Positions 13,096 through 42,900 of a stretch of DNA of 64,000 nt are shown here, piece after piece. This DNA comes from Rebecca billardiae RCC1528 (Eukaryota; Protista; Haptophyta). The notes beneath the pieces are model-generated. The model saw nothing but the letters and a program-made list of their open reading frames with translations. It did no database searches and was not told where the DNA came from. The stretch's first letter is position 1, and each line of letters starts with the position of its first letter. Position numbers and translations under genes: made by a program. The DNA lies in NCBI GenBank assembly GCA_965240325.2, contig OZ251249.1, forward strand, positions 558,001 to 622,000, written 5' to 3'.

Positions 13096-15603
13096 GATCG
13101 CGGCGGTGCCGTTGGCGCCGGCGGCGGAGACGGGGACGGAGGACGAGACGCCGGCGAACGCGCGGATGCACTCCGCCTTGAGCTGCGCGACCTCCGCCGT
13201 CGAGCGCACCACCACGCCCTCCGCCGCGCACGCCGCGCGCATGCGCAGCAGCGTCACCGCCACTCGGCACGAGAGCACGGCCGAGCGCTGCAGCGCCGTC
13301 ACGTCGGCGGACTCGAAGCGGAGCGTCTCCGGCAGCCCGGACGGGTCGGTGGGCACCGACACCGAGTCGCCCGACGTGCGCGAGAACGCCAGGTGCGCCA
13401 GCGCGCACTGCAGCAGCGCCTCGTACGCATACGATCGCCCAGCGGACAGCGCGCTGAGGTCGACGTGGGGGGAGGCGACGGAGGGCGGCGCGCCCGGCGG
13501 CGGGGCGGGCGCGGCGGGCGCGGCGCCGCGCGGCGCGGGGCCCGGGCCGCCCGCGCCGGGCTGAGCCACCGCCACCACCGCCGCCGCTGCGGCTGCGGCT
13601 GCCGCGGGCGGCGCGGCGCGCGACGGCGACGCGGGCGCCGCCGAGCGTGACGCCGTGCTACGCGACCAGAGAGACAGCGAGGTGGAGGCGTCGGCGGAGG
13701 TGCGGGCGACGCCGATGGCGGCGGCGGCCGCGACGGCGGAGCCGCTCGGGAGGCGCGGCGGGAGCCGGCCGGCGGCGACGGCGGCGATCGGGCCGGTGGC
13801 GATGGCGGCGCCGCCGGGCGCGGCGGAGGCGCCGCCGCCGCCCGCCGCGCGCGCCGCCTCGGCGTGTGCGCGCGCCGCGCCGCCGCCCGCCGCCGCCGCC
13901 GCCGCGCCCGCCGCCGCCGCCGGCCGTGCCGCCGCCGCGGCCGCGCCCGCCGGCGGCGCGCGGCCCGCCGCCGCCCCGCCCGCCGCCGCCCCCGACGCCG
14001 CGAGCGACAGCTCCCGCAGCACCGCCTCCCGCGCATACGTGGCCGTGCCAGCCAGGTTGAGCTCTCCCGAGTGTAACAGCTCATCGAAGCGGTCTCGCTC
14101 CAGTCGGTCTGCGCGCGCGGCGGCGGCGGGGTGCGGGGGCGTGCGTGGGGTGTGTGTGTGGGCCGGCGGCGTGGGGGGGGGGGGGGCGAGCGCGCGCGCG
14201 CGCGGCGGAGCGGCGCGGCGGGCACTCGCCCCACCGTCTCACCCCGCTCCGCAGCGCTCGGCAGCGCACGCGCGCGCAGACGCGCTCGGGCGCGCGCACG
14301 CGCACACGCACGCACCGGCGTCATTCATCAGCACGGCGCGCGCGGCCTGCAGGTGGAAGTGGGCGATGTCGGAGCGGATGTCGTCGATGCAGCCGAAGAG
14401 GAACTCGAAGATGTCGGGGATCAGGTGGTGCAGCTGCTCGGCGTCGGCGTGCGCAAGCGCGGACGAGCCCGCGCCGCTCCGCGGGCGGCGCGCGGCCGCG
14501 CCGCTCGGCGCACGGCTGTCGCACGCGCGCAGCCGAGGCAGCATGGCGTCGGCCCACGCCTGGACGGCCGCGTCGCGCGAGGGCGCCTGGAGCGCACGCA
14601 GCTGCGCGGCGGAGGAGGGCGGCGGCGGTGCGCGAGGGGCGCGCGCCGCTCAGCCCGCGTGTCAGCCGCGCGCAGTCCGCGGCGGCACGCGCGCCGCCAC
14701 ACACCACCACCGCTCGGCGCGCGCGCCGCATCGCGCCGCGCCCGGCGCGCGCCGCGCGCCGCGCGCGCACGCACCTTGTCCAACACGTACTCGACGATGT
14801 CGGCGAGCGCGTGCGCGTCGAGCGCGCCGTGCGCGAGCGCCTGCACGAGCAGCTGCAGGTCTATCCGCTCGTGCAGCTCCGCGCGCAGCTCAGGCCTGTG
14901 CGGCGCGAGCGCCGCCAGCGCGTCCCGGAGCTCAGACGTGAGCGCCAGCACGCGCAGGTAGCGGCCTCGGCACATGTCGGCGGAGAGGACTTCCCAGAAG
15001 TTGGAGCGGCCGCTGCCGGCGGAGGCGGGGCCGTGCTGCGTGCCGATGCTCACGGAGGACGACGACGACGGCGCCGCGCCCGCGCCCGCCGCGCCGCCGC
15101 TCTGCCGCCGCGCGGACGTGGCGCGGCGCGCCGTTAGCGAACCGCCGCCGCCGCCGTGCGAGCCGACGCCCGCCGCCGCCACGCTGCTGCGCTCGGCCGA
15201 GGCGGAGGCCGAGGCGCGCGCGGGCGGCGGCGGCGGCGCGGCGGCAGCGGACGCGCTCGCGAAGCCGCGGCTCGACGGCGCCGACGCCGCCACGCCCGCG
15301 CCCGCCGGCTGCGGCGGCGCGCCCGCGCCCTCAAGCGCGGCAGCGCCGGCGCCCACCCCGCCGGCGGGCGCGGACGGCGCGCCGCCGCGCTTGGCGGAGT
15401 GCAGGCTGCTTCGGCGCAGCAGGCCGGGCCGCGCGGAGCCGCCGGCGCCGCCGCGGCTGCGCGGCCCGTCCGACGCCGCCGGCTCCGCCGCGCCCTGCTG
15501 CGCCGCGGACGCGGCGGAGGTGGCCCGCCGGGGCGGCGCGGCGGAGAGGGCGGCGGCGACCGAGCCGTGTCCTGCGCCCGAGGCGGCCGCGACAGGCACG
15601 CCC

Positions 15604-15634
<31 letters not shown>

Positions 15635-17510
15635 CGGCGCTCTGCGCAAAGGCGGCGGCGACCGACCGTCCGCCGTCCGCGTCGGCGCCGCCCGCCCCGC
15701 CCGCCCCGCCGGCGTGGCCGCCCTCCCCGCCCGCGTCGGCCTCGGCCGCGAGCGCCGCGGCCGCGCGGCGCCGCACTGCGAGAACGGGCCGCAGCGGCGG
15801 TGTGAGTGCGCCGCGCAGCAGCAGCTGCTCGACGGCGCCCTGCACGGCCTGCAGCGTGCGCAGCGCGGCCGCGGCGCGCTCGGCACGCTCGCTGGCGGCG
15901 GCCGCCGCCGGCGTCGAGTCCAACCCGCCGCCGCCGCCGCCAGCCAAGCCGCCGCCCCCACCGCCCGTACGCACCGGCGCGTAGGACTGCGCAGGCGGTG
16001 CTGCAAAGGTGAGCCAGTTGCGAAGGAAGCGCTGGCCGCGCGTGCACGCGATGTAGAGCGTGGAGAGCGCGTCCTCGTCGACGCGCAGCGCCATCGCCGC
16101 GCGCGCGCCCGTGCCCGCCGCGCTGCGCGGCGAGGCGAGCCCGTCCGCCGCGCCGGCCTCATCCTCCGCAGCCGCCTCCGAGCCCGCGGCGGCGGCGGCC
16201 GCGCGCGGCGAGGGCGGCGCGTCCGCGCCGCCGTCCGCGCCGTCCGCGGCGGGCGGGGGCGGGCCGCAGCAAAGAAGCACCGTCGCGACGAGCACCGCGT
16301 CCGCCGGCGCGTGCGCCGCCGCGGCCGCCGCGACGAACCGCGCCTCCGAGAGCTCGTCGGCGCGCGCCGCTCTGGCGGCCGCCGCGGCACCCGCGCCCGC
16401 GGCGCCACTGCCCGCCGCGGCGCCGCCCGCGCCCGCGGCGGAGGAGGCGAGCGCCTCGACGGCGCGCGTGCTGCGCGCGCCGTCGGCGCCCGCCGCGCCG
16501 TGCGCGAGCCCCGCGGCGCCCACCACCGCGCCGAGCGGCAGCTGCATCAGCGAGGCGACCACCGCCGGCGCCGCGCCCCACGTCGCGCACAGCAGTCCGT
16601 ACCCGGCAGCGAGGGCGGTCTCACGGTCGGCGGCGCGCGCAAACGAGGCGGACGCGGACGCGTCGCCGGGCGCGGCGTCGGGCTCGGACTCGAAGGAGGC
16701 GCTGTCCAGGCTCTCGTACTCGGCGGCCGACGCGGCGATCGCGCGCGCGCGCTCCGCGCTCGCGCCGCCGCGCTCGCGCCACGCCGCGTCCGCCTCCGAC
16801 GCGGCCGTGGCAGCCGAGTCACCTTGGCCGCCGGAGCCGGCGGTGCCGTCCGGCGGCGCGCGCCCGCCCTCGCCGAGGCGCGGCTCGTCGCGATCGTACC
16901 GGCCGGCGTCGTGGTGGTAGAGCTCGTCGTACGCCGCGCCGTACGCGCGTGCGAACCCGAACGCCCCGCCGCCGTCCTCCTCCTCGTCCTCGTCGTCGTC
17001 GTCCGCGCCGCCGTCAGGGTCTGAGCCGCCGCGGTCACTCGCGTAGCCGTCGTCGTCGTCGACGGTTGAGGCGTCGTCGTACGTGCCGAGCAGCCCGACG
17101 TCGCCGATGGCGCTGCCGGCACGCCAGTCCGAGCCGGCGGCGGACCTGCGCGCGGGCGGAGCGCGCGGGGCGCGGGCGGTGTGTGTGTGAGCGCACTGGC
17201 CTAAGCGCTCGGGGCTTGCGCGCGCGCGCGCGCGCGCGCTCGGGCGCGTAGGCGCGTAGGCGCGCGGCGGGCGCGCGCACATGTTGTCATCCGACTCGAT
17301 CACGTCGCTCAGCGCGGGCGGCGGCGGCGGCGCCAGCGCGAGGCGCGACGCCGCGACGTCGTCGACGCCGATGCCGAGGGCCTCCTCCTCATCGACCTCG
17401 CGCGCTTCGGAGGCGTCGGCGTACGAGTCGACGAGCGACTCGTCGTCGTCGATCTCGAGCGCGCCACTCACGCCCCGCCGAGATCTCGGCGCGCTTCCGG
17501 AAGTCGCCAT
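12310..17510 (-). CDS. T-complex protein 11 (TCP11/SOK1)-domain protein with long low-complexity regions
   Basis: ATG at 17510; introns 17146-17280, 14602-14774 and 14109-14315. Spliced motifs NFWEVL...ELRDAL...IDLQLLVQ...LQAPSRD...DIRSDIAHFHL...LERDRF...LPETLRFE follow the TCP11 family pattern. Confidence 0.78.
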
Positions 17511-18396
17511 GGGAGCCGCGCGGCCGTCGCTTGCGCCCGCGCCTCGCCCCTCCCTCCGGGGCTGCTCAAGGTCACGGCCAATGGCTCTTGCGGGCCTGCT
17601 TGGTTTAGGAGCGCGGGTAAATGCCCCAAGCCATTCGATGACGTTACCGCGCGTCGGCTTGGTGCGCCGCGCTGGCTTGGGTAACGACATGCAAAGGCAC
17701 GCACGGCTAGCTGATGGGGCCCCAAACCCGGCTTTGGACGTCAAGTGGCCAACTGCCGACCCGGACGACTCGCTATATTGGTGCGCGATGAGGTCCGATC
17801 GTGCCGTTCGACGCGCAAATGTTCGCCCTAGCGGTTCAAGACGGGTGCCTGCAGCCGGTGTCGGCATCAACGTCGCCCCGGTCGGTGCGAGCCAATGCGA
17901 GAACACGGGAGGCTAGGTGACCGAGTGTTGCCACGAGACTAGAGTGGCGGTCTGCAGCCCGTGCCTCTCGGAACGCAAATAACAAGCCCGGGCGGCCGGC
18001 GGCGCCCGCCGCGTGACCGAGCCGGCCCAGCCCGTGGGTCAACGCGGCTGCGGGTGGGCTGACTTGCACCGCAGAATAGTGCCACCGCTGTAGACGGTGA
18101 CCCGGACCGAGTGTCCGCTGCGGCTGCGGGCGGGCCTCCGGCCTCCCGGACTGCGGAGCGTGCGGGCCGTGCCCCGCGCGGAGCCACAATCACAGTCAGT
18201 TGAACCGAGTGATGACGGTAGTGCGAGTCTTGGTTTACGCCGTCGGATCCTCGGATATCCATACCGCGCCCCTGCGCCCGGGACTTGCGCGGCATGCGCT
18301 GCCATGTGGCCCGGCTAACTCCGCCTACTAGGCTAGGACGTCGTCGTAGTCGGAATCACCGACGGACACCGAATCGTCCGAATCATCCGCGAATCA

Positions 18397-20678
18397 TCAT
18401 GGATTCATGGGCTCCACCGACTGCCCACACCGCCGCCGCCGGGGCGGCGACAGGCTGATGGGCGCGCCGAGCAGCCCGCCGCCGAGCTGATAGTGAAGCG
18501 GCGGCTCTGCAGTCGCCATGGGCGCAGAGCCGGCATGATGGGCATCGTCTGCTGCCACTCCAGGCAGCCCGCCCACCGCAGCCAGCGCCAGCGCCACGTC
18601 GGAGCGATGCCGCTTCAGTGCCTCCTCGGCGCTGCCACTGGCCCTGATGCTGCCCGGGCCGCTTTTGCGCCGTGGGCCCATAGCCGGCGATGTGGTGAGC
18701 GAGCCGTCCAGCCGCGGCCCTCTTCGCACCAGCGCGGTGGGCGAGCACGCCGAGGTGCGCGGCTTCCTCAAGGACGGCAGCGGCGACAGGCTGCCCGGCG
18801 TCGCCGAGTCAGCGGGGGTCGTGCCGCCGCCGGCCTCGTCGGCCACCGCGGCCGCCACGACGCCCGCCTCATGCTCATCACAGCTCCACGCGAGGGGGCA
18901 GCGCGCCTCGTGCAGCGCGCGCAGCTGCATGCGCGTCTTCTCGAAATCCGAGGCGCGCACGAGCGTGTGCCAGTCGAGCGCCTGCAGCACCGCCGCCTCG
19001 TGCTGCTGCAGCTGCTCGGAGTCGCAGTCCCACATCTGCAGCCGGGAAGCCAGCTGGTTGAGGGTGGGCGGCGCGTCGGCTGCGCGGCGCGGCGCGACGT
19101 GGCGCGAGCGGTGGGGCGGCGCGCGGCGGCGCGCGGCGGGCGTGACGGGTGAGCCGCGCGCACGCGGCGGCGAGCGCGCGCGTGGCGTGTGTCGCGATGC
19201 CGCGGGCTGCGCGCACAGTGGTGTGCCTTCACCGCGACCACCACCGCGCCGACCACGTTCTCGTGCCACTGCGCGCAGAGCGCACGCGCGCCCCAGCGCG
19301 CCCAGAGCCGCTCGAGCAGCAGCGCGGCGACCACGAGCAGCTGGTCGTCCAGGTCGAGCGTGAGCTTGAGCACCATCAGGAAGCGGTACGCAGACTCGGC
19401 GGAGGGCGGGGGGCACGCCTCGTCGGCATCCATGTCCGACATCGCCATCCCGCTGCTGCTCGCGCGCGCGCCGCGCGGATACACCAGACCGCTGCCGCTG
19501 CCCAAGCGCAGGATGGCGCCGCCCCCGCCGCCGCCGCCGTCGCTGCCGTCCTCCGCATCGCTGAGCAGCTCGTCGCAGCAGTCGTCACTCTCGTCGTCGA
19601 GGAGCATGCTGTGATCGTCGCGGGTGCACTCGCGCGCGTCGAGCGCGGGGAGCACACACCCTGCGCACGCGCACCCGGCGCCGGCACACGCGCCGCACCC
19701 TCGAGCTGCGACCGGCGCGTCGGTCGCAGCGGTGGCGGTCGCGCTCAGCCGGTGCGATCTCGCACTCGACGTGCTGCCAGCTGTCGCCGCTTCGGGCGCT
19801 GCGCCGCTGCTGAGCAGCTGGACGAGGAGGAGCGCGCAGCCCATGACGATGATGTGCGTCTCGATCTGGTCGGCGGGCACATCCGAAGAGACGCCCTCCT
19901 CGCGCGCACCTGGCTCACACTGCGACGGCAGCACGCCGCGCTGAGCCCGGCCCGTCGGGAGCATCTGCGGCGCGGCGCCACGCTTGGAGCGCACGCCGCT
20001 GCCGAGGGCCGCCGCGCTCGTGTCGCGGCTGGCCGGTGGCAAGCCCACGAGCGCCTCGACGTACCGCGAGGTACCCATCGCCTCGTCGAAGCTGCTCGCG
20101 TACTCGGCCAGCTCCCACGCGTCCGCTCCGCGCGGGAGCACGCCATCGATGCCGGGCGCCGAGCTGAGCGCCGCGCTGGTCGCGTGAGCACGCGTGCCGG
20201 GCGGCGCGGGCTCGGCGAGCAGCACGACGGAGAGCGGCCAACCACTCGAAAACAGCATGCGCACGAACATCACGGCGTTGCTCTGCGCGGCGAGCGGGCG
20301 CGGACAGGCCGGGGGGCAGAGGCAGGTTGGCGCGTGCGCGTGCGGCAGCGCGCGCGAGCGCGCACGAGGGCGTGGCGGCGCAGAAGGAGCGCGACGCACC
20401 TGCCAAGCGCCGACGTCGCAGAAGATGCGCGTGTACGCGACGCAGCCCTCGTCACGCACGTCCGCGTCGATCGCCTGGAGCGCGCACATGAACGAGCGCG
20501 CGACGTCGACCCGCGCAAAGCCAGCGGCGCGCAGCTTGGCCTCGGCGCTCGACGCCTCCTCTGCCGACGCGTCGCTGCAGACGAGCAGCGCGGTGGACTG
20601 CGTGCTCAGCGCCAGGAGCGACGAGCATGACCAACGGCGCGACGGCATCCCCACCACCAGCGTGGACCGCGCCGTCAT
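18397..20678 (-). CDS. Receiver-like domain + cyclin-box fusion protein, paralogue 1
   Basis: ATG at 20678; introns 20283-20399 and 19080-19216. Cyclin box LLVVAALLLERL...WHENVVGAVVVAVKAHHSD...LQQHEAAVLQALDWHTLV (cyclin Y/PHO80-like pattern). N-terminal ALLVCSD...LRAAGFARVDVA...AL...YTRIFCDV...FVRML...LSVVLLA...GIDGVLPR resembles a REC domain. Confidence 0.72.
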
Positions 20679-20973
20679 CGCCCGGGCTCGCGCAGGCGTT
20701 GGGTGGGATGCGTGCCTTGATGGGGAGGGAGCGTGTGACGTGTGAGTGTGGTTGATTATTTTGATGGCGGGCGAAACCACCTAATTGTACGGTTCCCACT
20801 GGCGGTAAGTATTAATCAAGATGAATACGTGAATCGTCGAGCCAGAGGGTTAGAATCATCTTAAACCACTGATGATTCAGGGTGGACCTCTATTGAGCAA
20901 ACTATGATGTGGAATCTTTTCATATTCGGCCTCACTCCGAAATAAACTCCCATGCTCGATCATGTGATGAATA

Positions 20974-21567
20974 CAGGTGGATACGGGCTAACTGGACACA
21001 GGGGCTATCTGGACACTCAGCGGGCGGCGGGCCTCGTGGCGAGGGCTCGTGGGCGAACGAGCACGAGCGCCCACTGGCGGGTCGCCACGACGGCGCACGA
21101 TGTTCGCTGAACTCACCTGGTCGTGAGACGTCGTCTGCGCACGCGCCAGGTCGCGCTTCTCGCCGCCTTCGCCTTGTTTCGTGAGTCCCGCGCACAAGGG
21201 CGAACGCCAGCGTTTCAAGCCGCAAGGCGCGTGCGCGGACTCAGGAAGGGCGGACTCCGAGGCAAGGCGCGGTTGCGCTGGCGTGGGTAGGTCCCAGAGC
21301 AACCGTCCGAGCCGCTGCACACGCTTTTCCTCCGCGCGCGCGTCTCTGAGCTCGATTCCCATGCCTCAGCCAGTGCCAGGGGCTAATTGGACAGTGCCAT
21401 TGCGGCCGCCACGCGCGGAGACGGGCCCGCAGCGCAGAAAGCGCGCTGCGGCGGAACTCCAGGGACCCCCTGAAGTCCGTCCCTGGCGCCCCTTCGACCC
21501 CAATGCTCCCAGGGAGGCCTCCGCGTGAGTTGGGTCGGCCACTGTCCAGATCACCCGTATCCACCTG
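20974..21567. mobile_element. 594-bp Tc1/mariner-type MITE with TA target duplication
   Basis: TA|CAGGTGGATACGGG (20974-20987)...CCCGTATCCACCTG|TA (21554-21567). The inverted match extends to about 25 bp with few mismatches, and GGGCTAxxTGGACA recurs internally at about 21002 and 21380. Confidence 0.85.
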
Positions 21568-23452
21568 TACCGGTATCCGCGGGTATTGTAGTGGGTCACT
21601 CCAGCAGGTATTATCGACGTCAGTGCTGGTTTAACCTGATTTGCCGCGGTTAGCGCGCAGATACTGGGGATTCCGTCCTGATGCGCTTAGGTAACGAGAT
21701 CCACGGCGGCTTTCTGCTCCGCTCGCTCCGGGCTGGTGCGGGCCTCCGTGGCTGGTGCGGGCCTCCGTGGCACGCACGGACGGCACGGTGGGCGACCCAG
21801 ACCAGTTGACTGGAAGAGAGATGGACTGCAATCGAGGCGAGCTCCACGCGCTCAGCCTCCACTACCTTGTCGAGCTTGGCGAATGCTATACTTTCCTTTC
21901 AAGCGCTCGCATGCATAGAGTCGGATGCCGTCTTGCCGCCGGTGTTACTTTGAAATCCGTTTGAACGTGGTCGCGGCAGGTTGGTTGGCCGGATAGTCAG
22001 GCAGCCAGGCAGGCCTCCTCGGCGTAGACGACGACATGATGCATGCCAAGCGCGCCGATTACGCGCAGAAAGGCGTGCGCACGCGTCCTCGTGCACCTGT
22101 CAGGCTGCAGCCTTGGTAGTGGCAAATATAATCGGATGAGAACAAACCTGTGACTGCCACACTCGGCCACAGCTGCCAGCACACCAGCCAGTGCCTTGCT
22201 GGCGAGCGCGCACCGTGGAGAGGCGGCGAGCGCGCAGAAACTTGAGAGAGATGAAGATCTGCGGCTTGTGACCCACGCTCCTCAGTCAGTGCATCCCGAT
22301 GCGGTCCCAGCTGCAGCTCTTTCATCATATCCGTATCGGATGAGTGACGTACTGAATTTACATATTATCAGTAGTATGCTGATGACTCGTGGCATCACAC
22401 TCCTCAGGCGCCCTCAATACTATTATAAGCAGCAGTGCCGAAATGAGCAGTGCTGTCTGATATCAGCATCCGTGCATTGAGCTCGCGGGCCGCCGCGGTG
22501 GACGTCTCCGCAGCGGCGGACGACGCGGGTCACGCGGTGCCCAGGCTGCGACCTGTGTGCACTCCGCCGGCAATCCGCGTCACGCACATCAGGAAATCTT
22601 CTCCGAAGTCTAAATCGTCCTATACAGCTACGTACGAATAATTTAACGTGTACGTAGGCCACTCGACTTGCACTCGGCAATCACGCCGTGCGCGCGGCCT
22701 GCGGCTGCTGCGTGCGGCAACTCAGCGGCAAGCCGCCAAGCGTGCGTGTCACGCGCAACTGGCAGGTGAGTGAGTTCAGCGCGACGAGTCAGGTGAACGC
22801 GCGCAGATCAGCGCGTGCAGTACGTACACCGCCTACAGCCACTTCTCGACCGATCGCCTACCTGCCTGAAGCAGCTGCAAGGCGTGCAGCCGGGTGTCGC
22901 GGGCACACGGCCAGCCTGGCGGGCATGACACGCCCGCCGGGCCGTACGGCCGCTCGGCGTGCTGCCGCGCGATGCCATCGTGGAGGCATTGTAGCTGGAT
23001 TCAGGGACCCGCCAGTCTGGCAGGCTGTCTGAGGGTAGCCGTAGATACAGACCCAGATGCTGCGACTCGTCAGAATGCAGTAATCATGCCGCGTTCACAG
23101 CGGCCGCCCCAAAACAGGTAGTACCGCCCCCACGCTCTGCCAGGGGATCGTCGACATCGCCACGACATCGTCGGCGTCGCGCGGTCATATCATCGCGGCG
23201 GACGAATTATTATACTATATCAGCAGTAGACTTTATCAGTAGTCGCGTAGACCGGACACTTCATCAGTGACTTCACGTCCCGGCTGTCGCCGGCACGGTC
23301 CGCGCCGCGCCGTACCGGCCGTCCGGCGACGCAGGACGCGGCAGGTGGCCTATGGCGCACTGGCCGGTTCACTGACTCGATCTACTCGGGTGTATGAGGG
23401 TCTGACTGACGAAGAGAGTCTGCTTTCGCCACTACGGTAGTGGCACCGCCGC

Positions 23453-25688
23453 TCAGTTGGCTTTGGCCAAGCGCAAGGGCGCCGAGAGAGCGGCGGCCTG
23501 AAGAGCGGCACCTTGGTCGTGGGCCTCGGAGGCGCAGGCGTCCTGCAGCGCGCAGCAGGCCGTGGCGAGCCGCGACGGCGCCACGTCCGACGAGGCGGGA
23601 GTTCTGGCCGAATCGTGTAACCCGTGCGCGACGAGTGCGCTTCCGGAGCGCGCGTCTGCCGCGCTGCTCGACACGCTTCGACGGCGGCGGCCAAAGCCCG
23701 CGATGACTGCGGCCGCCCCAGCCTCAGGCGAGCGCTGGAGGCGTCGGCCTAGCGCGGTTGGCGAGCACGCGGCCACGCGTGGCTCACGCGGCCGCTGCGT
23801 GAGCAGCGCCGGGGATGGCCAATCCAGCGGCGACGAATCGGCGGCGTCTGCACCGCCGATGGTGTCGCCGGTCTCCTCACGCGGCAACGAGGCGGCCGAC
23901 GCCAGAGGACAGCGCGTGTCATGAAGAGCGCGCAGCTGCATGCGCGTGCTCTCAAACTGCGACGTCCGCACGAGCGTGTGCCACCCCACGCCCTGCAACA
24001 CCACCGCCTCGTGCTGCTGCAGCTGGTCGGCGTCGCAGTCCCACATTGCCAGCCGCGAGGAAAGCGTCGTGAGCGTTGGCGGCGAGTCGGCTGCGCGGCG
24101 CGGCGCGCGCGCGCGCGCGGGCGCGGGGGTGGTGGTCTGTCAGTCATTTGATGCGGGGATGGCAGCGCGCACGCACGTTCGCAGCCATGATGGCGCTCGC
24201 GACTCGCCGGTGCGCGCGCGGTGAGCCGCGCGCACAGTGTGCCTTCAACGCGACCACCACCGCGCCGACCACACGCTCGTGCCACTGCGCGCAGAGCGCA
24301 CGCGCGCCCCAGCGCGCCCAGAGCCGCTCGAGCAGCAGCGCGGCGACGACGAGCAGCTGGTCGTCCAGGTCGAGCGTGAGCTTGAGCACCATCAGGAAGC
24401 GGTACGCAGACTCGGCGGAGGGCGGGGGGCACGCCTCGTCGGCGTCCCCGTCCGACGTTGCCGGGTCGCTGGAGCTCGTTCGCGGCGTAGTGGACGGGTA
24501 GCTCCAGCTGCTGCCGCTGCTGACGCGCGGCAACGACACCAAGCTGCTTCCGCGCAGTCCGCCGACGTTGTTGTCGCCCGCATCGCTGAGCTGATCGTCG
24601 TCGGAGCTTGCTTCGTCGCTGTCGTCGTCGAGCAACATGGCCTCGTCAATGCGGGCTGGACGGCACGCCTGCGAAGCGCACGCGCACCTGCTTTCCCTGC
24701 ACTCGACGCCTTTGAGATGCGCACTGCCGCATTGTGGCAGCGCAGCAGCAGGGAGCGAGTCATCATCATGCTCAGCAGGCGGCGCAGCTGCGTGCGCAGC
24801 CACCGGCGCAGGGTCGTCACTCAGAAGCTGGACGAGGAGGAGCGCGCAGCCCATGACGATGACGTGCGCCTCGATCTGGTCGGCGGGCACATCCGAAGAC
24901 GCGCCCTCCTCGCGCGCACCTGGCTCACGCTGCGACGGCAGCGCGCCGCGCTGAGCCCGGCCCGTCGGGAGCATCTGCGGCGCGGCGCCACGCTTGGAGC
25001 GCACGCCGCTGCCGAGGGCCGCCGCGCTCGTGTCGCGGCTGGCCGGTGGCAAGCCCACGAGCGCCTCGACGTACCGCGAGGTACCCATCGCCTCGTCGAA
25101 GCTGCTCGCGTACTCGGCCAGCTCCCACGCGTCCGCTCCGCGCGGGAGCACGCCATCGATGCCGGGCGCCGAGCTGAGCGCCGCGCTGGTCGCGTGAGCA
25201 CGCGTGCCGGGCGGCGCGGGCTCGGCGAGCAGCACGACGGAGAGCGGCCAACCACTCGAGAGCAGCATGCGCACGAACATCACGGCGTTGCTCTGCGCGG
25301 CGAGCGGGCGCGGACAGGCCGGGGGGCAGAGGCAGGTTGGCGCGTGCGCGTGCGGCAGCGCGCGCGAGCGCGCACGAGGGCGCGGCGGCGCAGAAGGAGC
25401 GCGACGCACCTGCCAAGCGCCGACGTCGCAGAAGATGCGCGTGTACGCGACGCAGCCCTCGTCACGCACGTCCGCGTCGATCGCCTCGAGCGCGCACATG
25501 AACGAGCGCGCGACGTCGGCCCGCGCAAAGCCAGCGGCGCGCAGCTTGGCCTCGGCGCTCGACGCCTCCTCTGCCGACGCGTCGCTGCAGACGAGCAGCG
25601 CGGTGGACTGCGTGCTCAGCGCCAGGAGCGAGGAGGATGACCATCGGCGCTTTCCCATCCCCGCCGGTAGGGTGGACCGCGCCTTCAT
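23453..25688 (-). CDS. Receiver-like domain + cyclin-box fusion protein, paralogue 2
   Basis: ATG at 25688; introns 25293-25409 and 24091-24235 at the same positions as in paralogue 1; same motifs. Confidence 0.72.
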
Positions 25689-26178
25689 CGCCACCAGCCG
25701 TCGCCGAGCGCCCTAGCGCAGGTGTGCCGTCTCGAGCGTGGTGGGAAGGTAGGGAACACAGTCGCCCAGCGAATCTTAAAGAATCTAGGGTCCAACGCCC
25801 GTTCAGGCGTTCATTATTGTGCCTGCTTGGGTGTGCGCAGTGCGCACTCTTCTAATAGTCATTTACAGTTCGTTCGCCAGTGAGGAATGAAAGAGGCGAA
25901 CTCTCCTCGATGACTGCGCAGTAGTTCTTAATTATTGGCGGGAAGGAAGCCTCTTTTAAAATCGATCCCACAATAATAGGATCTTAACCAGCGACAGCCA
26001 CTCTTCAGGGCCACGTGGTCAATGGCCAGGGCTCAAGAATGAATCACCCAGCTACCTGCCGACTGCCGTTCGACGACGTGTCCACTCTATCCTGAGATCA
26101 TTGATTGGGCTCGAGGTAAATCAGTCGCTCATTTACCCGGAACGTACCATACCTGTACGTACCGGTTGGGTCGATGAT

Positions 26179-29007
26179 CTAGGTCGCCGCGTGCGCCGGC
26201 ACGCCCAGGGCGGCTGGGCCGGTCGTCGCCGCCGCGAGCGGCACGAGCGGCTGCGCCATCTTGTAGAACTCGAAGCCGCCGCCGAGGAGGTACGCGTGCA
26301 CGAACGTGAGGACGCGCGACTTGGCGTCGCCGATCTTCGCCTCCTGGTGCGCGGGGTACGCCGAGCCGAGCCACACGTCGAGCATGAGCAGCCCGCGGTC
26401 GTACGTCGCCTCCTGCACCGCAACCGCGCACGACGTCCAGTCGGCCGAGGCCTCGAGCGCGAACGCCTGGACGGCGTCCACCAGCTCGGACACGCGCGGC
26501 GGCGGCGTCTGCGCGGGCAGCTGCACGGCGAGCTTCACCGCCGGCGGCGCCGAGCGGTGCAGGTTGGTCACCGCCATCTTGCGCAGCACGTGGTTCATCA
26601 CGACGAACGACTGGCCCGCGATGCTCACGAGCCGCGTGTGCGTGAGCCAGATCTCCGAGACCGTCGCCGACGCGACCGCCGGCTCGCGCCCCGCGTCGCT
26701 CAGCAGCACGGTGTCGCCAATGTCGAACGGCCGCACGTACAGAACATACAGCATGCCCGCCGCGGTCTCGTACGGGAGCCAGCCGAGCGCGAAGGAGCAC
26801 GAGAGGAGGGCTGTCGCGACGGGGATCACCCACGCCTCCACGTCCATCCCCCACGGCACGAGGAACACCGCGGCGATCAGCAGCACCATCCCCCACGCGC
26901 CGCGCGCGCACGCGTTCACCTTGGCGTTCAGCTCGCCGAACGAGTCGACGGATGCGGAGATGAACCGCTGCTCCTTGTACACGCGCTCGAGCGCGGCGAC
27001 GAACTCGTCGCGCGAGATCGCGTCGAGCGGGAAGAGGCCCGCCAGCGCCTGCAGGTGCTGCGCGCGTGCCTTGCGCCCGCCGAACGTGCGCGGCGGCATC
27101 GCGGCGCCGACCGCGCGGAGCAGCGGCTCGCGCCCGAGCGCGTGCGCGCGCCCCGCAGCGGCCGCGGCCGCGGCGACCGCCGCGTCCGGGTCTGTGGCGC
27201 GGCGCTCGCTCGCGTTGGAGAGGGAGACGCCGAGCGCGTCGTCCTGCGCCACACCCGGCCCGAGCGCCGCCCCCGCCGCCCCCGCCGCCGGCCCCAGCTC
27301 GACGAGCAGCGCGTCGAACGCCTTCTCCGCGCGCCGGCGCGCCGCCTCGAGCGTGCGAGCGATCCCGCCGCCGAGCTCGAGCGAGCTGCGCAGCAGCTCG
27401 AGCTGGGTCGCAAAGTCGCCGGCGAGGGCGTGCCTCGTGTCGAGCGCGGAGCCGGCGGCTGCCGCGCCGCCGCTTCCGCCGCCCTTCGGCGCGCCCGCGC
27501 CGCCGTCAGCGCCGCGGGCGCCGCGCGCCGCGCCGCCGCGCCGCACCGTGGCCGCGGACGCGCCGCGCTGAAGGCCTGCCACCGCCGCCGCGCCGCCGCC
27601 GCCGTCGGCGCTGTGCCGCGCGGCCGCCGGCGCGTCGGCAGCCGCGCGCATGGGCGGCGGCTGCGCGCCGCAGGCTGCTGCCATCGCGCCGCCGCGCGGC
27701 GTGCCCGTCGCCGAGCGCGTCTCGCCGCCGCCGCCGCCCGCGACGGGCGCGCGCAGCCGCCGCGCTTTCTGCCGCCGCCGCGCCGCCTTGCCGACGGTAA
27801 GCAGCAGCCGCGCGGCGCGCAGCGAGACGAGCGCCGCCTGCACGCGCGTCTCGAAGTGCACGATGGAGCGCCTCTCGAACGAGCCGGCGAGCCACGCCTC
27901 GAGCAGCCCCCACGAGAGCGCGCTCACCCCAAGCCAGACGTGCACCGCGCGCAGCCCCGGCGTGCCCAGCAGTGCGCGCCACGCCGCGCTGTCACCATGC
28001 ACCGGCTCGGCGCCCGCCGCGCCGCCGTGCGCAAACAGAGGCATGAGCAGCAGCCAGACGAGCGCCGTCCCCGGCCAGCCCTGGAAGCCCTTGACGACGA
28101 GCGCCGCGCTCGCGGGCACGCCGCCGCAGTACTCCAGCGCGACGAAGAGCGACCACGCCCCGCCCGTCAGCGCGCGCGCCACCGCCAGCAGGTAGAGGGG
28201 GCGCAGCAGCCACACGCGCCACTGGCCGTGCAGCGCCGAGTCCGTGTGCGTCAGGAAGAAGAAGGAAATTGGAAGGAGCAGGAAGAGCAGACGCGCGGCG
28301 GCGGCGCACTCGTTGGCGCACTCGCGCGCGACGAGCGCGCACGCCGGGCCGAGCTCGGCCGCGCACTTGCCCCGCGCGCGCGCGCACGGCGCGCCGCGCG
28401 CGCCTCGGCGCTGGCGGCCGGCCGCCCCGGCGGCGGCGGCGGCGGCGGCGGACGCGGCAGCGGCGCCGCCGCCGCCGCCGCTTGCCGCGTCGCCCGCGAG
28501 CGGCTGCTGCGCCTCGCTCGGCGCCGGGCGGTGCGCCTGGGTGCGGCGCGAGGCGCTCGGAGGGGGCGGCGCGGGCTCTGTCTCCGCGGCCACCTCGCGC
28601 ACAAGCGGGTCGAACGCCAGCTCCGAGTTGCTCAGTGGCACCGCGCCGTGCTGCGCGTCGCCGTCGGCGGACGAGGCCGAGTCGTCTTGGCTGTCCATGC
28701 CGCCGTCGCGCTCGGGCACGGCGTCCGGCGCGTGCTGCTGCTGCTGCTGCTGCTGCAGGAGCTCGGCGTCCACGCGCCCGACGATCACCTCGTCGTGCCG
28801 CACGCCCTGTGAATCCGGCCCGCTCGCCGCCGCGCCGCCCTTGGCATCGGCGCCAAGCTGCGCGAGGCTTGCGACCGCCTGCGCCGCCTCGGCGAAGATC
28901 TCGGCGTCGAGCATGCGCGCGGGGCCGGCAGTCGACGGTATGGTCGACTCGGTGGCGCGGTGCTCGAGCACGCCCACCGGCGGGATGGCGCGGCGGGGCT
29001 CCGCCAT
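26179..29007 (-). CDS. MscS-like mechanosensitive channel, paralogue A (apparently intronless)
   Basis: LYVLYVRPFDIGDTV...VSEIWLTHT...VVMNHVLRKMAVTNLHRS is the MscS signature, preceded by TM helices and ISRDEFVAALERVYKEQRFISASV as in eukaryotic MSL proteins. The start ATG is inferred. Confidence 0.88.
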   Translation of the reverse strand: MAEPRRAIPPVGVLEHRATESTIPSTAGPARMLDAEIFAEAAQAVASLAQLGADAKGGAAASGPDSQGVRHDEVIVGRVDAELLQQQQQQQHAPDAVPERDGGMDSQDDSASSADGDAQHGAVPLSNSELAFDPLVREVAAETEPAPPPPSASRRTQAHRPAPSEAQQPLAGDAASGGGGGAAAASAAAAAAAGAAGRQRRGARGAPCARARGKCAAELGPACALVARECANECAAAARLLFLLLPISFFFLTHTDSALHGQWRVWLLRPLYLLAVARALTGGAWSLFVALEYCGGVPASAALVVKGFQGWPGTALVWLLLMPLFAHGGAAGAEPVHGDSAAWRALLGTPGLRAVHVWLGVSALSWGLLEAWLAGSFERRSIVHFETRVQAALVSLRAARLLLTVGKAARRRQKARRLRAPVAGGGGGETRSATGTPRGGAMAAACGAQPPPMRAAADAPAAARHSADGGGGAAAVAGLQRGASAATVRRGGAARGARGADGGAGAPKGGGSGGAAAAGSALDTRHALAGDFATQLELLRSSLELGGGIARTLEAARRRAEKAFDALLVELGPAAGAAGAALGPGVAQDDALGVSLSNASERRATDPDAAVAAAAAAAGRAHALGREPLLRAVGAAMPPRTFGGRKARAQHLQALAGLFPLDAISRDEFVAALERVYKEQRFISASVDSFGELNAKVNACARGAWGMVLLIAAVFLVPWGMDVEAWVIPVATALLSCSFALGWLPYETAAGMLYVLYVRPFDIGDTVLLSDAGREPAVASATVSEIWLTHTRLVSIAGQSFVVMNHVLRKMAVTNLHRSAPPAVKLAVQLPAQTPPPRVSELVDAVQAFALEASADWTSCAVAVQEATYDRGLLMLDVWLGSAYPAHQEAKIGDAKSRVLTFVHAYLLGGGFEFYKMAQPLVPLAAATTGPAALGVPAHAAT

Positions 29008-29093
29008 GCCGCGTCGATATGTACGCCCTCGCCGTCGGGTGGGACGGCGAGCAGGGGAGAGAGGGGAATCGGTCCCAGACCGGAGCCACAGCC

Positions 29094-32000
29094 ATGGCGG
29101 CGGCGCGCGGCGGACCCGACGACGAGGGCGAGCTGCTGAGCGCGCCCAGCAGCACACCGCGCGCCGTGGACCAGAAAGCGTTCGCGCATGCCATCCACAC
29201 TGTGCTCATGCTCCGCACCCTCGGCGCTGCCGCCTCGGCGCAGACCGCGGCCGGCGCGGCCGCCGCGTTTGCGCCGGCACGGCCGGCGCATCCTCCGCGC
29301 CCGGACGAGATCGTGCTCTCGCGCGTGGACGCGGAGCTGCAGGAAGGCGCGGACTGGGGCGAAGATGAGGCGTCACCAGGGCGGTCGGAGGATCCGTCCG
29401 CCTCTCCCTCGCTGCGCACCGCCGGGGCTGCCGCGCGCGCCGAGGCAGCGGGCTCGCCGGCCGGCAGTCTCGGCGATGCCGACGGCGACGGCGGCGACAG
29501 CCGCGCGGACGAAGGCGCCGAGTGTCTGCCTCGGGCAGATGATGACGAGGGTGGTGGTGATGACGACGACGGCTTCATCTCCGCGTGCTCCTCGGAGCCG
29601 GACTCTGACGGCGACACCGGACTCCAGGATTACGTAGACCCGTCGGCTGAGAGCCCTCTGCTGGCGCTGGGCGCACGCGCCGTCGGCGGCGGTGCGGTGG
29701 CGGCGGTGGGTGACGCAGACGGCGGGCTGCGCGGGGCCAGCGGCTCGGTCTCGGTCGTGGGCGCGCGGCAGGACGCCACACTCGCGCGCACGCCGTCGGA
29801 GCCGGCGTCGAGCGCCGGCGCGCACGCATCGGCGGCCGAACCGTCCGCCCGCCTTTGCGTGCGCACGCCCTCGAGCGCAAGCTGCTGCGCCGCCGCGCTG
29901 CCGCCTGGCTCCGCGGGCACCGGCGTGTCGCAGGGCGCGCCACACGACCGCCCCCACGCCCGCGCGCCCTCGAGCCTCGGCAGCTGCGCCGCCGCCCCGT
30001 CGTCCGGCTCGCGCGCGCGTGGCGGCGCGCGGCGGCGCGACGGCGCGCAGGCGGGAGCGGCGGGACGCGCGCTGGCATCTGCGGCCGAAGCGGCGGAGGC
30101 CTGGGCAGCCGGCGGCGCGGGTGGCGGCGCGGGCGGGCTCGGTGCCCAGCGCAGCCCGCATGCGCCCGGTGTGCACCTCGGCCGCCGGCGCTCGGCACCG
30201 AGCGCGCGCGCGCGGCGGCGTCGGCTGCTCGCCGGCGCGGCGCGGTGTGCCGAGCGCGTGGCACACGAGGCGGCGCTGCTGTGGCCAATCCTGCCGCTGG
30301 CGCTCTTCTTCTGCACGCGCGAGGACGTCGCGATGCGCCTCGCGTGGCGCGTGTGGCTGCTCCGCCCCGTGTACGCGCTCGCGGCCGCGCGGCTCGGCGT
30401 GGCGGCGGCGCACGCGGCGGCGCGCGCCGGCGCCGCCGCCGCGCGGCACTTCCACCACTGTTCCGTGCGGCCAGTAGCAGCAGCCGATGCCGCCCCCTTA
30501 GCGCACCCCTCGCATCTGCTCGCGGGCTGGCCCGGCGTGACGCTGGCGTGGGTCGCGCTCATGTGGGCCGGCTGCGTCGGCGACGCGTGGGGCTTCGCCG
30601 ACGCGCGCGCCTGGGCGGCGCTCTGGCGCACCCCCGGATTCCAGGGCCTACTGGCCTGGCTGACGCTGCTCAGCGGCACGTACTGTGGACTGCGGGCGGC
30701 GCTGCGGCGCGCGGACGGCACCGCGTCCGCACAGCACTTTGGCAGGCGCGTGCGCGCCGCGCTGGTCGCGCTGCGCGCGGTCCGGCTGGTCCTAGCCGCG
30801 GGGCACGCCGCCGCGCGGCAGCAGCTGCCGAGCGGCACGCCGCCGCCGCCGCCCGTCTCGGCCGCGCGGCGCGGCGTCTCCGGCGGCGGCGGCGCACCGC
30901 GCGAGCGCGGCAGCGCACCGCGCGAGCGCGCGCTCGGCTCGGACACGTCAGCTCGAGCAGGGCTGATGCTGCCCCCTGCCGGTGCGGCTCCGCACAACGC
31001 TGGCGAGAGCGTGCACGCGGAGGAGGACGGCGGCTTCCACCGCGCGCTCGGCCGCGCGCTCGGCGACGAGGACGGCAGCGGCGCGCCGCCCGACGGCGCG
31101 CGCCGCTCGGACGAGCTGCTTCTGTGTTTGCTGTGGCAGAGTGTGCGCACCGAGCTGGCGGTTGCGAGCTCGCTGCCCGAGGCGCGGCGGAGGGCGGAGG
31201 AGGCGTTCTGGGCGCTCGAGGCGGCCATGGCCACGTCGACGATGGTGGTGGGCGCTGACGGCGAGCTCGGCGTCTTCGGAGCCGGCGCCGACCGCTTTAC
31301 GGGTGCGGGTGCGGGCGCGGGGGCGCGCGCGGGCGCAGGCGCGGGCGCGCGCGCGGGCGCAGGCGCGGGCGCGGGCGCGGCGGGCGCGCTGGGCGTCGCG
31401 GCGGCGGCGCCGAGGTCCGGCGCGGCCGAGGCGGCGGCGGGCGGTCCCGCGGGCGCGCCGAGCCCGAGCGAGCCGAACGGCGCCGCGGTCGCCGGCGCGG
31501 TGCGCGGCCGGCTGATCCCTCGCGAGTACCTGCTCCGCGCCGCGGCCGCGCAGCTGCCCGCGCAGCTGCCGACGCGCGCGCGCGCCGCGCGGCTGCAGGC
31601 GGTCGCGGATCTCTTCGCGGCCGTGGGCTCGGACGGTCTCGCGCTCGGAGACGTGGTCGGCGCGGTCGAGCGCGCGTACAAGGAGCAGCGCTTCGCCGCC
31701 GCCTCGATCTCCGCCTTCGCCGACCTCTCGGCACTCGGCGGCCGGCTCGCGCGGCTGTGCTGGCTCGGCCTCGCGCTCGGCGCGAGTGCGTACCTGGTCG
31801 ACTGGGGCTTCTTGGATCTTTCGGCATTCGTTCTCTCGACGGGCACGGCGCTACTCTCGTGCGCGCTCGCCCTCGGCCGGCTGCCGTTCGAGGTGGCGGC
31901 CGGCGTGCTGTATGTGCTGTACGCGCGCCCCTTCGACATCGGCGACGCCGTGCAGCTGCTCAGGCCGGGACCGGACGGCGACGCGCGCACGGAGACGGCG

Positions 32001-39995: not shown

Positions 39996-42900
39996 ACGCC
40001 CGGGCTGGGCGCGGCGCGGCGTGAGGCTTTGCTGGCAGCCATGCGCCGCGGCCTCACGCGCGCGCCCGACTCGATGCCGTCGCCGCCGCCGCCGGGCTCG
40101 CGCGAGCGGCAGCCATCGCCCCCGCGCGGTCTCGGCGGCAGCGCAGACGGCGTCGCCGGCGCCTCGCCCTCGAGCCCTCCTGGTCAAGTGCCGCCCGCGG
40201 CGCACCAGCCGTCGCCGACGCCGCCGCAGCCCGCGCCGCCGCCGCAGCTGACGGACGAGGCGGCAGGCGGCTGGTGCGTTCCCCTGCGCTCGTGCTCGCC
40301 GCCGCCGATGCCGCCGCCGCTCCCGCCGCCCAGCGGCGGCGCACGACCGCGGCTCTCGCCGCCGCCGCCGCCGCAGCCGCCGCCGCATGCGCACTCGGCG
40401 CCGCCGCCGCGCGCCATGGCTGCTAGCCCCGAGCGGCGCCGCAGCCCTCACGCGACGCGCGTGGACGGCGGCGCGCGGGCCGCGAGCGATCGGCCGTGGC
40501 CCGACGCGCGCGCGGCCGAGGCCGGCGGCGCCGAGAGCGCGCCGCGGCCGCCCGCCTCGGCGGCGGAGGCGGGCCGTGCGCCCGGGCGTGCAACCGCGAT
40601 GGCTGGCGCGGCCGAGGGCGGCGGCGCGGCGCGCGCCGCCGTGCCGGCGGCGGCCGCGGCCGCGGCGGCGCGCGGCGCGCTGAGCCCATCAAGGCGCGCG
40701 CCTCGCGCCGAGGACGCAGGGGACGCCGCGGCGGCCCTCGAGGCGCACGTGGCCGCGGTCGCGCGCGCGCGGATGCACGCCGACGTGATCCGCTCGGCGG
40801 CGCGCGGCGAGCCCGCGCCGCCGTCGCCCGGCCGCGGCGGTGGCGGCGGCGGCGGCGCGGTGCCGCCGCGCGCCGCGCGGTGCGCCGCGGGCGGTGGGAC
40901 TGGGGACGCGTCGGCGGCGCCGGCGCCGGCTGGGCCCGGGGATGGCGTGCTGAGCGCGGCGCGTCTCGCGCAGCTCCGCGCGCAGCCGACGAGCGATGTG
41001 CTCACGCGCGCGGCCACGCAGCCGGCTGCTGCTCCGGCGTCGCCGCCCGGCGCGGAGGCGCGGCAAGCGGTTGGCGGCGGCCATGCTGGCACGGCGGCGC
41101 GGGGCGGCGGCGCGGCTGTGCACACGCCACCGCACGCGCAGCTCCCGTCGCCTATCGCGCCCGAGGCGGCGCGCGGCGCGCACGGCACGCACGCGGCCGC
41201 GACCACCGCCGCGTGCGCCACGTCGCGCCTCGTCGCCGCGCAGCCCACGGGCAGCAGCAGCAGCCCTGGCGCCCTCATCGCCTTCTCCCCCGCCGAGCGC
41301 GGCGGCGGCGGCGGCGGCGCGGGGGCGCCGGGCGGCGGCGCGGGCGCGCCGGGCGCGCCGCTGCCGCCGCTGCCCGACGCGGCGGCGCGCTCGGTGCACG
41401 GCGGCTCGTGCGCGGGCGGCGCCGAGCCCGGCGGCGGCGGCGGCGGCGAGCCGCCCGCGCCCGACGCCGCGCCCGCCGCCGCCGTCGCACTGCGCCCGCT
41501 GCCCGTCTCGCCGCGCCCGCCGCCGCGCCCGCCGCCCACACCGGAGGAGCAGGCGGGCGCGCGCATGCATATTCGGAAAGGATCGGCACTCGAGGCGGCG
41601 CGGCAATACGAGCGCGCGCTCAAGGCGTTCCAGGCAGCGCTTGAGCTGGACGGCCGCGCCGAGTACGAACTCGCCGGTGCGCGCGCGCCGAGCAGACCCC
41701 CCCGGACAGCCAGCCAGTCCGGATGTGCGGGCCGGACCGCGAGGCCTGTTTAGCTGCGGTGTGTGTGCGCCGAGCGCTGCGCCTGAGCTCACGCGCCACC
41801 GCGCCGCCGCGTGCCCGCGCCCACGCGCCGCCGCGCGCGCAGTTGCGCGCATGCAGCTCAAGCTGGGCGACGCGGAGAGCGTGGCGGCGGCGCGCGGCGT
41901 GCTCGCGCGCCTGGCGGTGCCGGACGCCGCGGAGGCGGAGGCGGAGGCGGCGGCGGCGGCAGAAGCACACGAGGGCGAAATCGGCCGCGCCGCCGCGGCG
42001 CAGCGCATGTTGCCACAGGCGCGCGCGCGCCGCGCGCGCGCCGCCGCTCGCTCTGTGTCCGCGGCAGCCGCGCGCGCGCGCGCCACCGCGGCCGGTGGGT
42101 CGTGCGACCTCACGCGCGCTCCCGCCCGCGCGCCGCCGTCCCGCCGCCCTGCTCCGCCGCCCTCCCCGCCCGCCCTGTGATGCGCTCCGCGGCCGCGCGA
42201 CGCCGCGCGGCGCCGCACGCGCGCGGCGCCGTGCCCTGTGTGCGGATGCGGCGGCGGGTGCGGCGGCGGGTGCGCGCAGGTGGTCCCGCGCGCGGTGAGG
42301 GAGCAGGCGCGCGCGAAGCTCGCGGCAGCCGACGAGCAGCTGGCTGCACTCGGCGGGTTTGACATGCGCGGCGCCACGGCGGCGGCGACGGGCGCGCCGG
42401 CCGCCGCGGACGACGGCGACGACGCGGCGGCGGCGGCAGGCGGCGAGCCGCGCCGCGCCGGCGCCGAGCCGGCGGCGGCAGACTCGGCGGCGGCGGCGGC
42501 GGCGGAGGCGGCGCGCGCGACGCCCGCCGCGCCGACCACCCCGGTGGCCGGCACCTTCAGCCAGCTGATGAGCGTGCTGAGCGGCGGCCGCCGAACGAGC
42601 GCGCCGCCGGGCCAGCGCAGCGAGGCGGCCGCGGCCGCGGCCGCCGCCGCCGCCTCCGCCCTCGCGCGCTCACCGTCCGCAGGCGCGCTCGGCGGCTCGT
42701 CGGTGTCGTCGTCGGCGGCGGCAGCGGCTGCCATGGGCCCCCCACCGCAGGTGCCGCCGCGAGCGTCCCCGCCGCCGCGGCCGCCGCCGCGCCAGCATGC
42801 GCACGGCATGGCCAGCGCGCGCGGCCATGATGCGGACAGCCGCAGTAACGGTCAAAGTAACGGCCGCGCCGCCGCCACCGCCACCGCCACCACCGACCCC

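Follow-up and report, generated by a model that had tools for sequence, protein, structure and literature searches.

Can a receiver domain of the two-component type be joined to a cyclin in a single protein, and if so, does the receiver still take a phosphoryl group? This question is raised by a tandem pair of genes in the haptophyte Rebecca billardiae RCC1528, located in a 64,000-nucleotide stretch of contig OZ251249.1 (assembly GCA_965240325.2, positions 558,001 to 622,000 of the forward strand; hereafter the window, with positions counted from its first letter). Two three-exon genes lie head-to-tail on the minus strand, copy A at 18397-20678 and copy B at 23453-25688. They are intact tandem paralogues, each encoding a receiver (REC) fold that a disordered linker joins to a cyclin Y-type module, and they probably act through the mechanism proposed below. 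A preliminary description of this DNA, made from the nucleotide sequence without database searches, had placed a tandem pair at 18397-25688, limits that agree exactly with the gene models, 18397 being where the stop codon of copy A ends and 25688 where the ATG of copy B begins.

Much of the evidence comes from the closest relative, P0001, a protein of 439 amino acids encoded without introns at L001:445-1764 of a 2076-nt Logan contig and colinear over both domains. An exhaustive phmmer search with P0001 against 1.84 billion representatives yielded 11 proteins at E <=1e-3. Among them are the relatives P0002, P0003, P0004, P0007, and P0011, whose similarity to P0001 lies in REC, in the cyclin, or in both; others are open reading frame (ORF) fragments of the window itself, an unrelated repeat protein (P0009), and a plain cyclin (P0010). 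One group of relatives, made up of P0003, P0004, and P0011 together with the subsequently found P0015, P0018, P0019, and P0020, has the same cyclin module behind a canonical receiver with the motifs DDD, CDIVMPE, VTG, and SKP, and the first three of these proteins score 48-55 bits with the Pfam family Response_reg (cut-off 30.2). A second group, P0002, P0007, P0008, P0013, and P0017, has a differently degenerate receiver. P0004 and P0015 come from Pavlova sp. CCMP459 (Pavlovophyceae), while P0002 and P0003 are MMETSP transcript records, the ORF of P0003 being complete. The MMETSP products of the relatives hold REC and cyclin in one ORF, and therefore both domains are on one mRNA in these relatives. 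Word-indexed protein searches with a window ORF, the family alignment, and the P0003 cyclin region retrieved only family members among the best 8000 candidates of each and left the taxonomic range no wider, and a blast search of a phage collection gave no match. Provisionally, the REC-cyclin Y family is found only in pavlovophyte haptophytes.

The receiver domain and its phosphorylation site

The N-terminal region of copy A was modelled with intron 1 read through, using as input an alignment of window positions 20073-20678 with the relatives (alignment A4). The predicted order of elements is beta1-alpha1-beta2-alpha2-beta3-[disordered insert]-alpha3-beta4-alpha4-beta5-alpha5, with predicted local distance difference test (pLDDT) values of 67-89 in the folded blocks. 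When this model was compared, independently of Foldseek, with 48,161 PDB representatives, all of the top 50 matches were receiver domains (Z 12.4-14.5, 113-127 residues aligned, root-mean-square deviation (rmsd) 2.0-3.3). The CheY-like, response-regulator character of this region, as first proposed in the preliminary description, is thus borne out. The AlphaFold 2 (AF2) model of P0001, built with the family alignment, has a (beta-alpha)5 arrangement at residues 6-139 that superimposes on CheY over 123 of 128 residues (VIA, Z ~15), and its Foldseek template modelling (TM) scores against the receivers of CKI1, Sln1, DesR, and CheY are 0.6-0.78, normalised to the target.

Sequence comparisons lead to the same fold. 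The family profile matches the receivers of RpfC, CKI1, and CheY at E values of 5e-5 to 1e-2. There is also a chain of homology, in which P0001 is similar to P0003 (E 2.4e-9), most strongly within REC, and P0003 itself reaches 54.6 bits with Response_reg against the cut-off of 30.2. A protein-language-model look-up with the REC part pointed to response-regulator-like and OKR_DC_1_N-like clusters at 0.92, which serve as leads only. At its curated cut-off, Pfam PF00072 (Response_reg) had no match in the window exons or in P0001.

In CheY, the acidic pair D12/D13 binds Mg2+, D57 is the phospho-acceptor, and T87 and K109 form the switch. The equivalent positions of the window proteins were located in alignments A1 and A4, where the register of beta1 is fixed by a conserved run of T-A-L-hydrophobic residues; residue numbers are positions in the spliced protein derived from coordinates. 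The motif LVCSD aligns with IIDDD of the canonical family receivers, so that the acidic-pair positions are occupied by Cys34 and Ser35. When RpfC is aligned through the family profile, its receiver has DD under the first two Asp of IIDDD, and the Asp of LVCSD (Asp36), which is Gly in P0001, lies one position past the acidic pair. Asp88 of IFCDV aligns with the phospho-acceptor Asp of IFCDIVMPE and is kept in both copies and in P0001. Further along, LLAEP aligns with VMVTG, replacing the switch Thr by Ala, and VLPRG aligns with VLSKP, replacing the switch Lys by Arg and the Pro by Gly; across the subfamily, Arg-Gly or Arg-Asp stands in place of Lys-Pro. P0001 shares this condition, with the Asp at the phospho-acceptor position kept, Cys and Ser in place of the Mg-binding Asp pair, Ala for the switch Thr, and Arg for the switch Lys.

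Since both Mg-binding Asp are replaced, the Thr is Ala, and the Lys is Arg, copies A and B are most likely pseudo-receivers. The preliminary description had raised this possibility, and it was right about the kept Asp in IFCDV and about the replaced Lys in LPRG. Its view that the acidic pocket of LVCSD is reduced was correct in recognising degeneration and understated its extent, as both canonical positions are lost.

The kept Asp88 allows a different account, in which the receiver of the pair still works: Asp88 would be phosphorylated from a histidine phosphotransfer (HPt) protein, Asp36 and other ligands would hold the metal, and the cyclin would be switched on or off. This conflicts with the Cys and Ser at both Mg-binding positions, the Gly of P0001 at the position of Asp36, and the replacement of Thr and of Lys-Pro; it is well established that CheY-type receivers neither bind metal nor undergo phosphotransfer once the acidic pair is lost. 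In its favor are the conservation of Asp88 in copy A, copy B, and P0001, the ratio of nonsynonymous to synonymous substitution (omega) of 0.25 in the N-terminal half of the receiver, where constraint on the protein is strongest, the canonical paralogues, according to which the family started as true receivers, and the presence of hybrid histidine kinases in haptophytes (PMC6324907). We regard a working receiver in this pair as improbable.

Two further motifs of the receiver were noted in alignment A4. N-G-C before beta3 and W-P-x-S-x-V before beta4 are invariant across all three subfamilies. In the receiver fold, the loops before beta3 and beta4 are on the face opposite the phosphorylation site, and these loops could form a family-specific interface that has outlived the phospho-chemistry.

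The cyclin Y-type module

A family profile built from seven members, with no window sequence among them, matches human cyclin Y (CCNY) at E 5.9e-22 over CCNY residues 115-291, and the match takes in the alpha-N helix before the cyclin box, where the family motif H-x-x-x-M-G is located. P0001 alone finds human cyclin Y among the PDB sequences at E 1.2e-3. With Pfam Cyclin_N (cut-off 23), P0001 scores 16.9 bits, P0002 29.6 bits, and P0008 ~29 bits. The P0001 model contains a helix at residues 192-224 (pLDDT ~90) and a set of helices at 310-438 (pLDDT >90). In a Foldseek search, CCNY was the first match (9r2i_D, E 7e-4), with receiver domains next, and residues 192-431 superimpose on CCNY 110-289 over 157 residues (VIA, Z 16.6, rmsd 3.1). 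The window copies are connected to this model by 57-60% identity to P0001 in exon 3, a region that tblastn of P0001 against the window matched at E 1e-20. Profile and model together identify the C-terminal part as cyclin Y-like, with one cyclin box between the alpha-N and alpha-C helices. The cyclin box named in the preliminary description is thereby upheld, by way of P0001 and the family profile, and refined to the cyclin Y type.

Searches with single window exons or ORFs were silent because intron 2 splits the cyclin box: Pfam gave nothing relevant, and the cyclin half-exons on their own found nothing significant among PDB sequences (CCNY at E 0.41, the rest chance matches).

The Lys of V-K-A-H (copy A) or L-K-A-H (copy B) and the Glu of H-E-A-A/V-V-L align with a Lys in helix 3 and a Glu in helix 5 of CCNY, which, after cyclin A-CDK2, we take to be the pair that contacts the cyclin-dependent kinase (CDK). 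This alignment bears on the possibility that the module is cyclin-like in fold and does not bind a CDK at all, having instead an adaptor or transcription-related role as in TFIIB and Rb folds, with the receiver as a dimerisation handle. Consistent with such a role are the sub-threshold Pfam cyclin scores of the subfamily and the omega of the cyclin halves against P0001 (0.58-0.65), which exceeds that of the receiver. The best match in sequence and in structure is specifically cyclin Y, flanking helices included, and together with the Lys and Glu this argues for a CDK-binding module; we give the adaptor role little credence.

Cyclin Y is a cyclin with one box that becomes active when 14-3-3 clamps the two phospho-motifs flanking that box (PMC13168255). 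It has been reported from animals and protists, and not from plants or fungi (PMC7686383). The REC-cyclin family shares with CCNY (PDB 9r2i/9r2n; PMC13168255) the single box between alpha-N and alpha-C helices and the motifs YRF, LERL, NW..K, and E..L. The N-terminal regions differ, that of CCNY being myristoylated, flexible, and without a two-component domain, whereas the family has a receiver fold there. The window proteins start with MTAR and MKAR and thus lack Gly2, the myristoylation signal, and the 14-3-3 motifs of CCNY (pS100, pS326) are without a clear counterpart in them. Between the receiver and the alpha-N helix, the canonical P0003, P0015, P0018, and P0019 have the sequence R-x-x-S-A-P-R, and P0015 adds R-S-K-S-G-P after the box. 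Both sequences are reminiscent of the two 14-3-3 motifs found on either side of the cyclin box in animal CCNY. At the aligned site, the window copies read K-R-G-A-A-P, with Ala for the Ser of R-x-x-S-A-P-R.

The cyclins of the Pho80/Pcl group and the P/U-type cyclins of plants and protists (PF08613) are a single-box sister group of cyclin Y. They differ from the REC-cyclin family in having no receiver domain, and the family matches cyclin Y better than Pho80; PF08613 matches are weak in P0003 and P0004 and reach 35 bits in the plain cyclin P0010.

Gene structure and sequence history

Gene models were derived from base-by-base alignment and motif positions. All introns of the two copies are bounded by GT..AG, and both reading frames are intact. 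The features are as follows, a slash marking an exon-intron boundary.

20400-20678, minus strand: copy A exon 1; ATG at 20678, a 26-residue leader, and REC beta1-beta3 with Cys34, Ser35, and Asp88 (codon 20417-20415).
20283-20399, minus strand: copy A intron 1; 117 nt, GT..AG, phase 0, in frame and stop-free, sited in the beta3-alpha3 loop.
19217-20282, minus strand: copy A exon 2; REC alpha3-alpha5 with Ala at the switch Thr position and Arg at the switch Lys position, disordered linker, alpha-N helix (~19815-19880), and first half of the cyclin box (~19217-19400).
19080-19216, minus strand: copy A intron 2; 137 nt, phase 1, donor CACT/GTGCGCGC, acceptor CAG/, cutting the cyclin box after the conserved K-A-H.
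18397-19079, minus strand: copy A exon 3; second half of the cyclin box and alpha-C helix (19079-18888), poorly conserved tail, stop codon at 18399-18397.
20679-23452: intergenic spacer; GC lower, at 58-70%.
25410-25688, minus strand: copy B exon 1; ATG at 25688, REC beta1-beta3, key residues identical to those of copy A.
25293-25409, minus strand: copy B intron 1; 117 nt.
24236-25292, minus strand: copy B exon 2; REC alpha3-alpha5, a linker with indels that has diverged from that of copy A, alpha-N helix, first half of the cyclin box.
24091-24235, minus strand: copy B intron 2; 145 nt, donor and acceptor motifs as in copy A, 54% identical to copy A intron 2.
23453-24090, minus strand: copy B exon 3; second half of the cyclin box, alpha-C helix, tail, stop codon at 23455-23453.

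The position of intron 2 is supported by a relative in which the homologous intron has been removed. The MMETSP product P0003 and the contig L004 are 100% identical on either side of a 148-nt gap that starts T/GTGCGC and ends CAG/, at the same codon and in the same phase as window intron 2 and with the same donor. Splicing of the window intron is predicted to create the junction codon T/CC, which encodes Ser, and P0001 reads K-A-H-S-D-A-P-P at this point. The 39 residues encoded by intron 1 are missing from every relative and are modelled as disordered (pLDDT <50) when read through; the ORF list had read through this intron because it is in frame and stop-free. An mRNA of either copy that retained intron 1 would keep its frame and gain 39 Pro/Arg/Ala-rich residues in the beta3-alpha3 loop, beside the Asp at the phospho-acceptor position. 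Where the coding sequence ends after the cyclin box is uncertain in both copies; their tails share only an island around A-C-S-P-T-A-L, and P0001 ends 13 residues past the box.

P0001 was considered as the cDNA of an orthologue, and this was rejected, as genomic contigs 100% identical to the window are present in the same Logan run. That run, ERR14847148, from which P0001 is derived, includes a contig 100% identical to window positions 17218-19289, intron 2 included, and therefore contains DNA of the organism from which the window comes. To judge from these sequences, P0001 is probably an intronless paralogue in the same alga. As both introns are precisely missing, the simplest account of its origin would be that an already spliced mRNA with both domains was reverse-transcribed.

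A blastn self-comparison shows 18888-20682 and 23899-25692 to be direct repeats of 85% identity, spaced 5010-5016 bp apart, and this identity is unevenly distributed. Exon 1, intron 1, the leading 468 nt of exon 2, and the stretch that encodes the first cyclin half are 93-100% identical between copies A and B, with synonymous divergence (dS) of 0.02-0.07, and 116 of the 117 positions of intron 1 are the same. Intron 2, the linker, and the tail are 42-55% identical, and exon 3, which encodes the second half of the cyclin box, has dS 0.59, nonsynonymous divergence (dN) 0.16, and omega 0.28. The pattern suggests an old duplication followed by two recent gene-conversion tracts, at ~20610-19815 and ~19425-19225. 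Relative to P0001, the copies have dS of ~0.5-1.0 and omega of 0.25-0.65, lowest in the first half of the receiver; copy A exon 1 is 74% identical to P0001 residues 1-70, at omega 0.25. Because omega is 0.28 between the copies in exon 3 and 0.25-0.65 against P0001, both genes are maintained under purifying selection, and the degenerate receiver is not drifting.

These data also bear on whether the copies are decaying duplicates, or separate receiver-like and cyclin genes that have been mis-joined in the models. Either would fit with tails that are not conserved between the copies past the cyclin box and with the stop of P0001 13 residues beyond it. Both are countered by the complete frames and conserved splice motifs of the two copies and by an omega of 0.28 at dS 0.59. 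Moreover, REC and the first half of the cyclin share one exon with the frame open across the linker, MMETSP products of relatives carry the two domains in one ORF, and the intronless P0001 is colinear. Decay or mis-joining is therefore highly improbable, and we continue with two intact genes.

Within the spacer at 20679-23452, the upstream regions of the two copies have no mutual similarity and there is no long ORF. Rfam had no match over 17-27 kb of the window, and tblastn with the family proteins found no further family copy in the window. The GC content of the locus region is 58-76%, and the maximum in the window is 86%; these values would be in keeping with a pavlovophyte such as Diacronema lutheri, the genome of which has a GC content of 73% (PMC8379373). 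Directly downstream of copy A (14421-17906, minus strand) is a long Ala/Gly-rich low-complexity ORF that matches Tcp11 (T-complex protein 11) at 30.2 bits (cut-off 27). Upstream of copy B (26179-29157, minus strand) is an ORF of 992 amino acids with no Pfam match at E 0.01, the C-terminal part of which (P-F-D-I-G-D-T-V) resembles an MscS-type channel by eye only. Farther away, an ORF at 42238-44679 on the plus strand has a match to a cyclic-nucleotide-binding domain (28 bits, cut-off 27.5).

Proposed function and relation to known systems

Under the account of the locus that we consider probable, each protein would serve as a subunit that activates or targets a PCTAIRE/PFTAIRE/Pho85-like CDK. 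The N-terminal domain, receiver-like in shape, would take no phosphoryl group and would function as a regulatory or docking module in a fixed state. As a docking module it might dimerise with phosphorylatable paralogues or compete against them, or it might replace the flanking regulatory segments used by animal cyclin Y. His-Asp input would be received by the canonical paralogues elsewhere in the genome.

The preliminary description had proposed a direct link from His-Asp phosphorelay to CDK activation. For the window pair this is probably wrong, because four of the five phosphotransfer and switch residues are replaced, whereas for canonical paralogues of the P0003/P0004 type direct His-Asp input is plausible. 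The light or clock input that it also named is purely speculative. Hybrid histidine kinases are on record in the haptophyte Emiliania huxleyi (PMC6324907), and an upstream relay is thus plausible for these paralogues. One could extend this to a scheme for pavlovophyte receiver-gated cyclins as a whole, in which canonical members would be phosphorylated by the relay and link a sensor kinase to a CDK, while pseudo-receiver members such as the tandem pair would be heterodimerising partners or decoys, or competitors for CDK or HPt proteins. We offer this scheme tentatively, as one that is rather unlikely.

The canonical pavlovophyte paralogues (P0003, P0011, P0004, P0015, and P0018-P0020) resemble the window proteins in architecture, in the NGC, WPxS, and HxxxMG motifs, and in the position of the cyclin-box intron, at ~23-32% identity. 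They differ in keeping DD(D), D, T, and K-P and in passing Response_reg, whereas the pair has C-S, D, A, and R-G at these positions.

Receivers that function independently of phosphorylation are familiar from the plant PRR/TOC1 proteins and from atypical response regulators of bacteria; in plant PRRs the acceptor position is Glu. Like those proteins, the window pair has a receiver fold that is under selection despite the loss of phosphorylation residues and that would be used as a regulatory or interaction module. It differs from them in that the output is a cyclin box rather than a CCT (or DNA-binding) domain and in that the acceptor Asp is kept, and in sequence the two are related only at the level of the fold family. 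Pfam found no CCT domain in the window exons or in the family proteins.

Several points weigh against the proposed account of the locus. Splicing and a single transcript of copies A and B are predicted from homologues and from the intronless relative. Pfam scores for both REC and cyclin are below the cut-off in the subfamily formed by the window proteins and P0001. The cyclin fold of the window copies would follow from P0001 (57-60% identity in exon 3) and the family alignment, and in the P0001 model the placement of REC relative to the cyclin has low confidence (predicted TM score, pTM, 0.47). With Asp88 retained and Asp36 next to the acidic-pair positions, some residual phosphorylation is conceivable. 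In addition, no CDK, HPt protein, or histidine kinase was found by Pfam among the long window ORFs scanned.

The architecture of receiver and cyclin Y appears to be undescribed. The preliminary description knew of no REC-cyclin fusion, and full-text literature searches likewise found no paper describing one; such a protein is unmentioned in the Diacronema genome paper (PMC8379373) and in a survey of eukaryotic histidine kinases (PMC6324907).

The combination would bring together two regulatory systems, with consequences for each: a receiver joined to a cyclin Y module would constitute a new class of two-component output and a new mode of cyclin regulation. Eukaryotic receivers are known to precede modules of the transcription-factor, phosphodiesterase, CCT, and kinase types, and cyclin Y is known as a membrane-anchored activator of CDK14/16 under 14-3-3 control. 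The pairing would also indicate that regulation of the cyclin Y type is present in haptophytes and has been remodelled there. The occurrence of canonical and degenerate receivers in one genome would provide a natural experiment on how a phospho-switch is re-used after its chemistry has been lost. If true, the receiver-gated cyclin family would represent a two-component pathway that acts through a cyclin-dependent kinase as its output.

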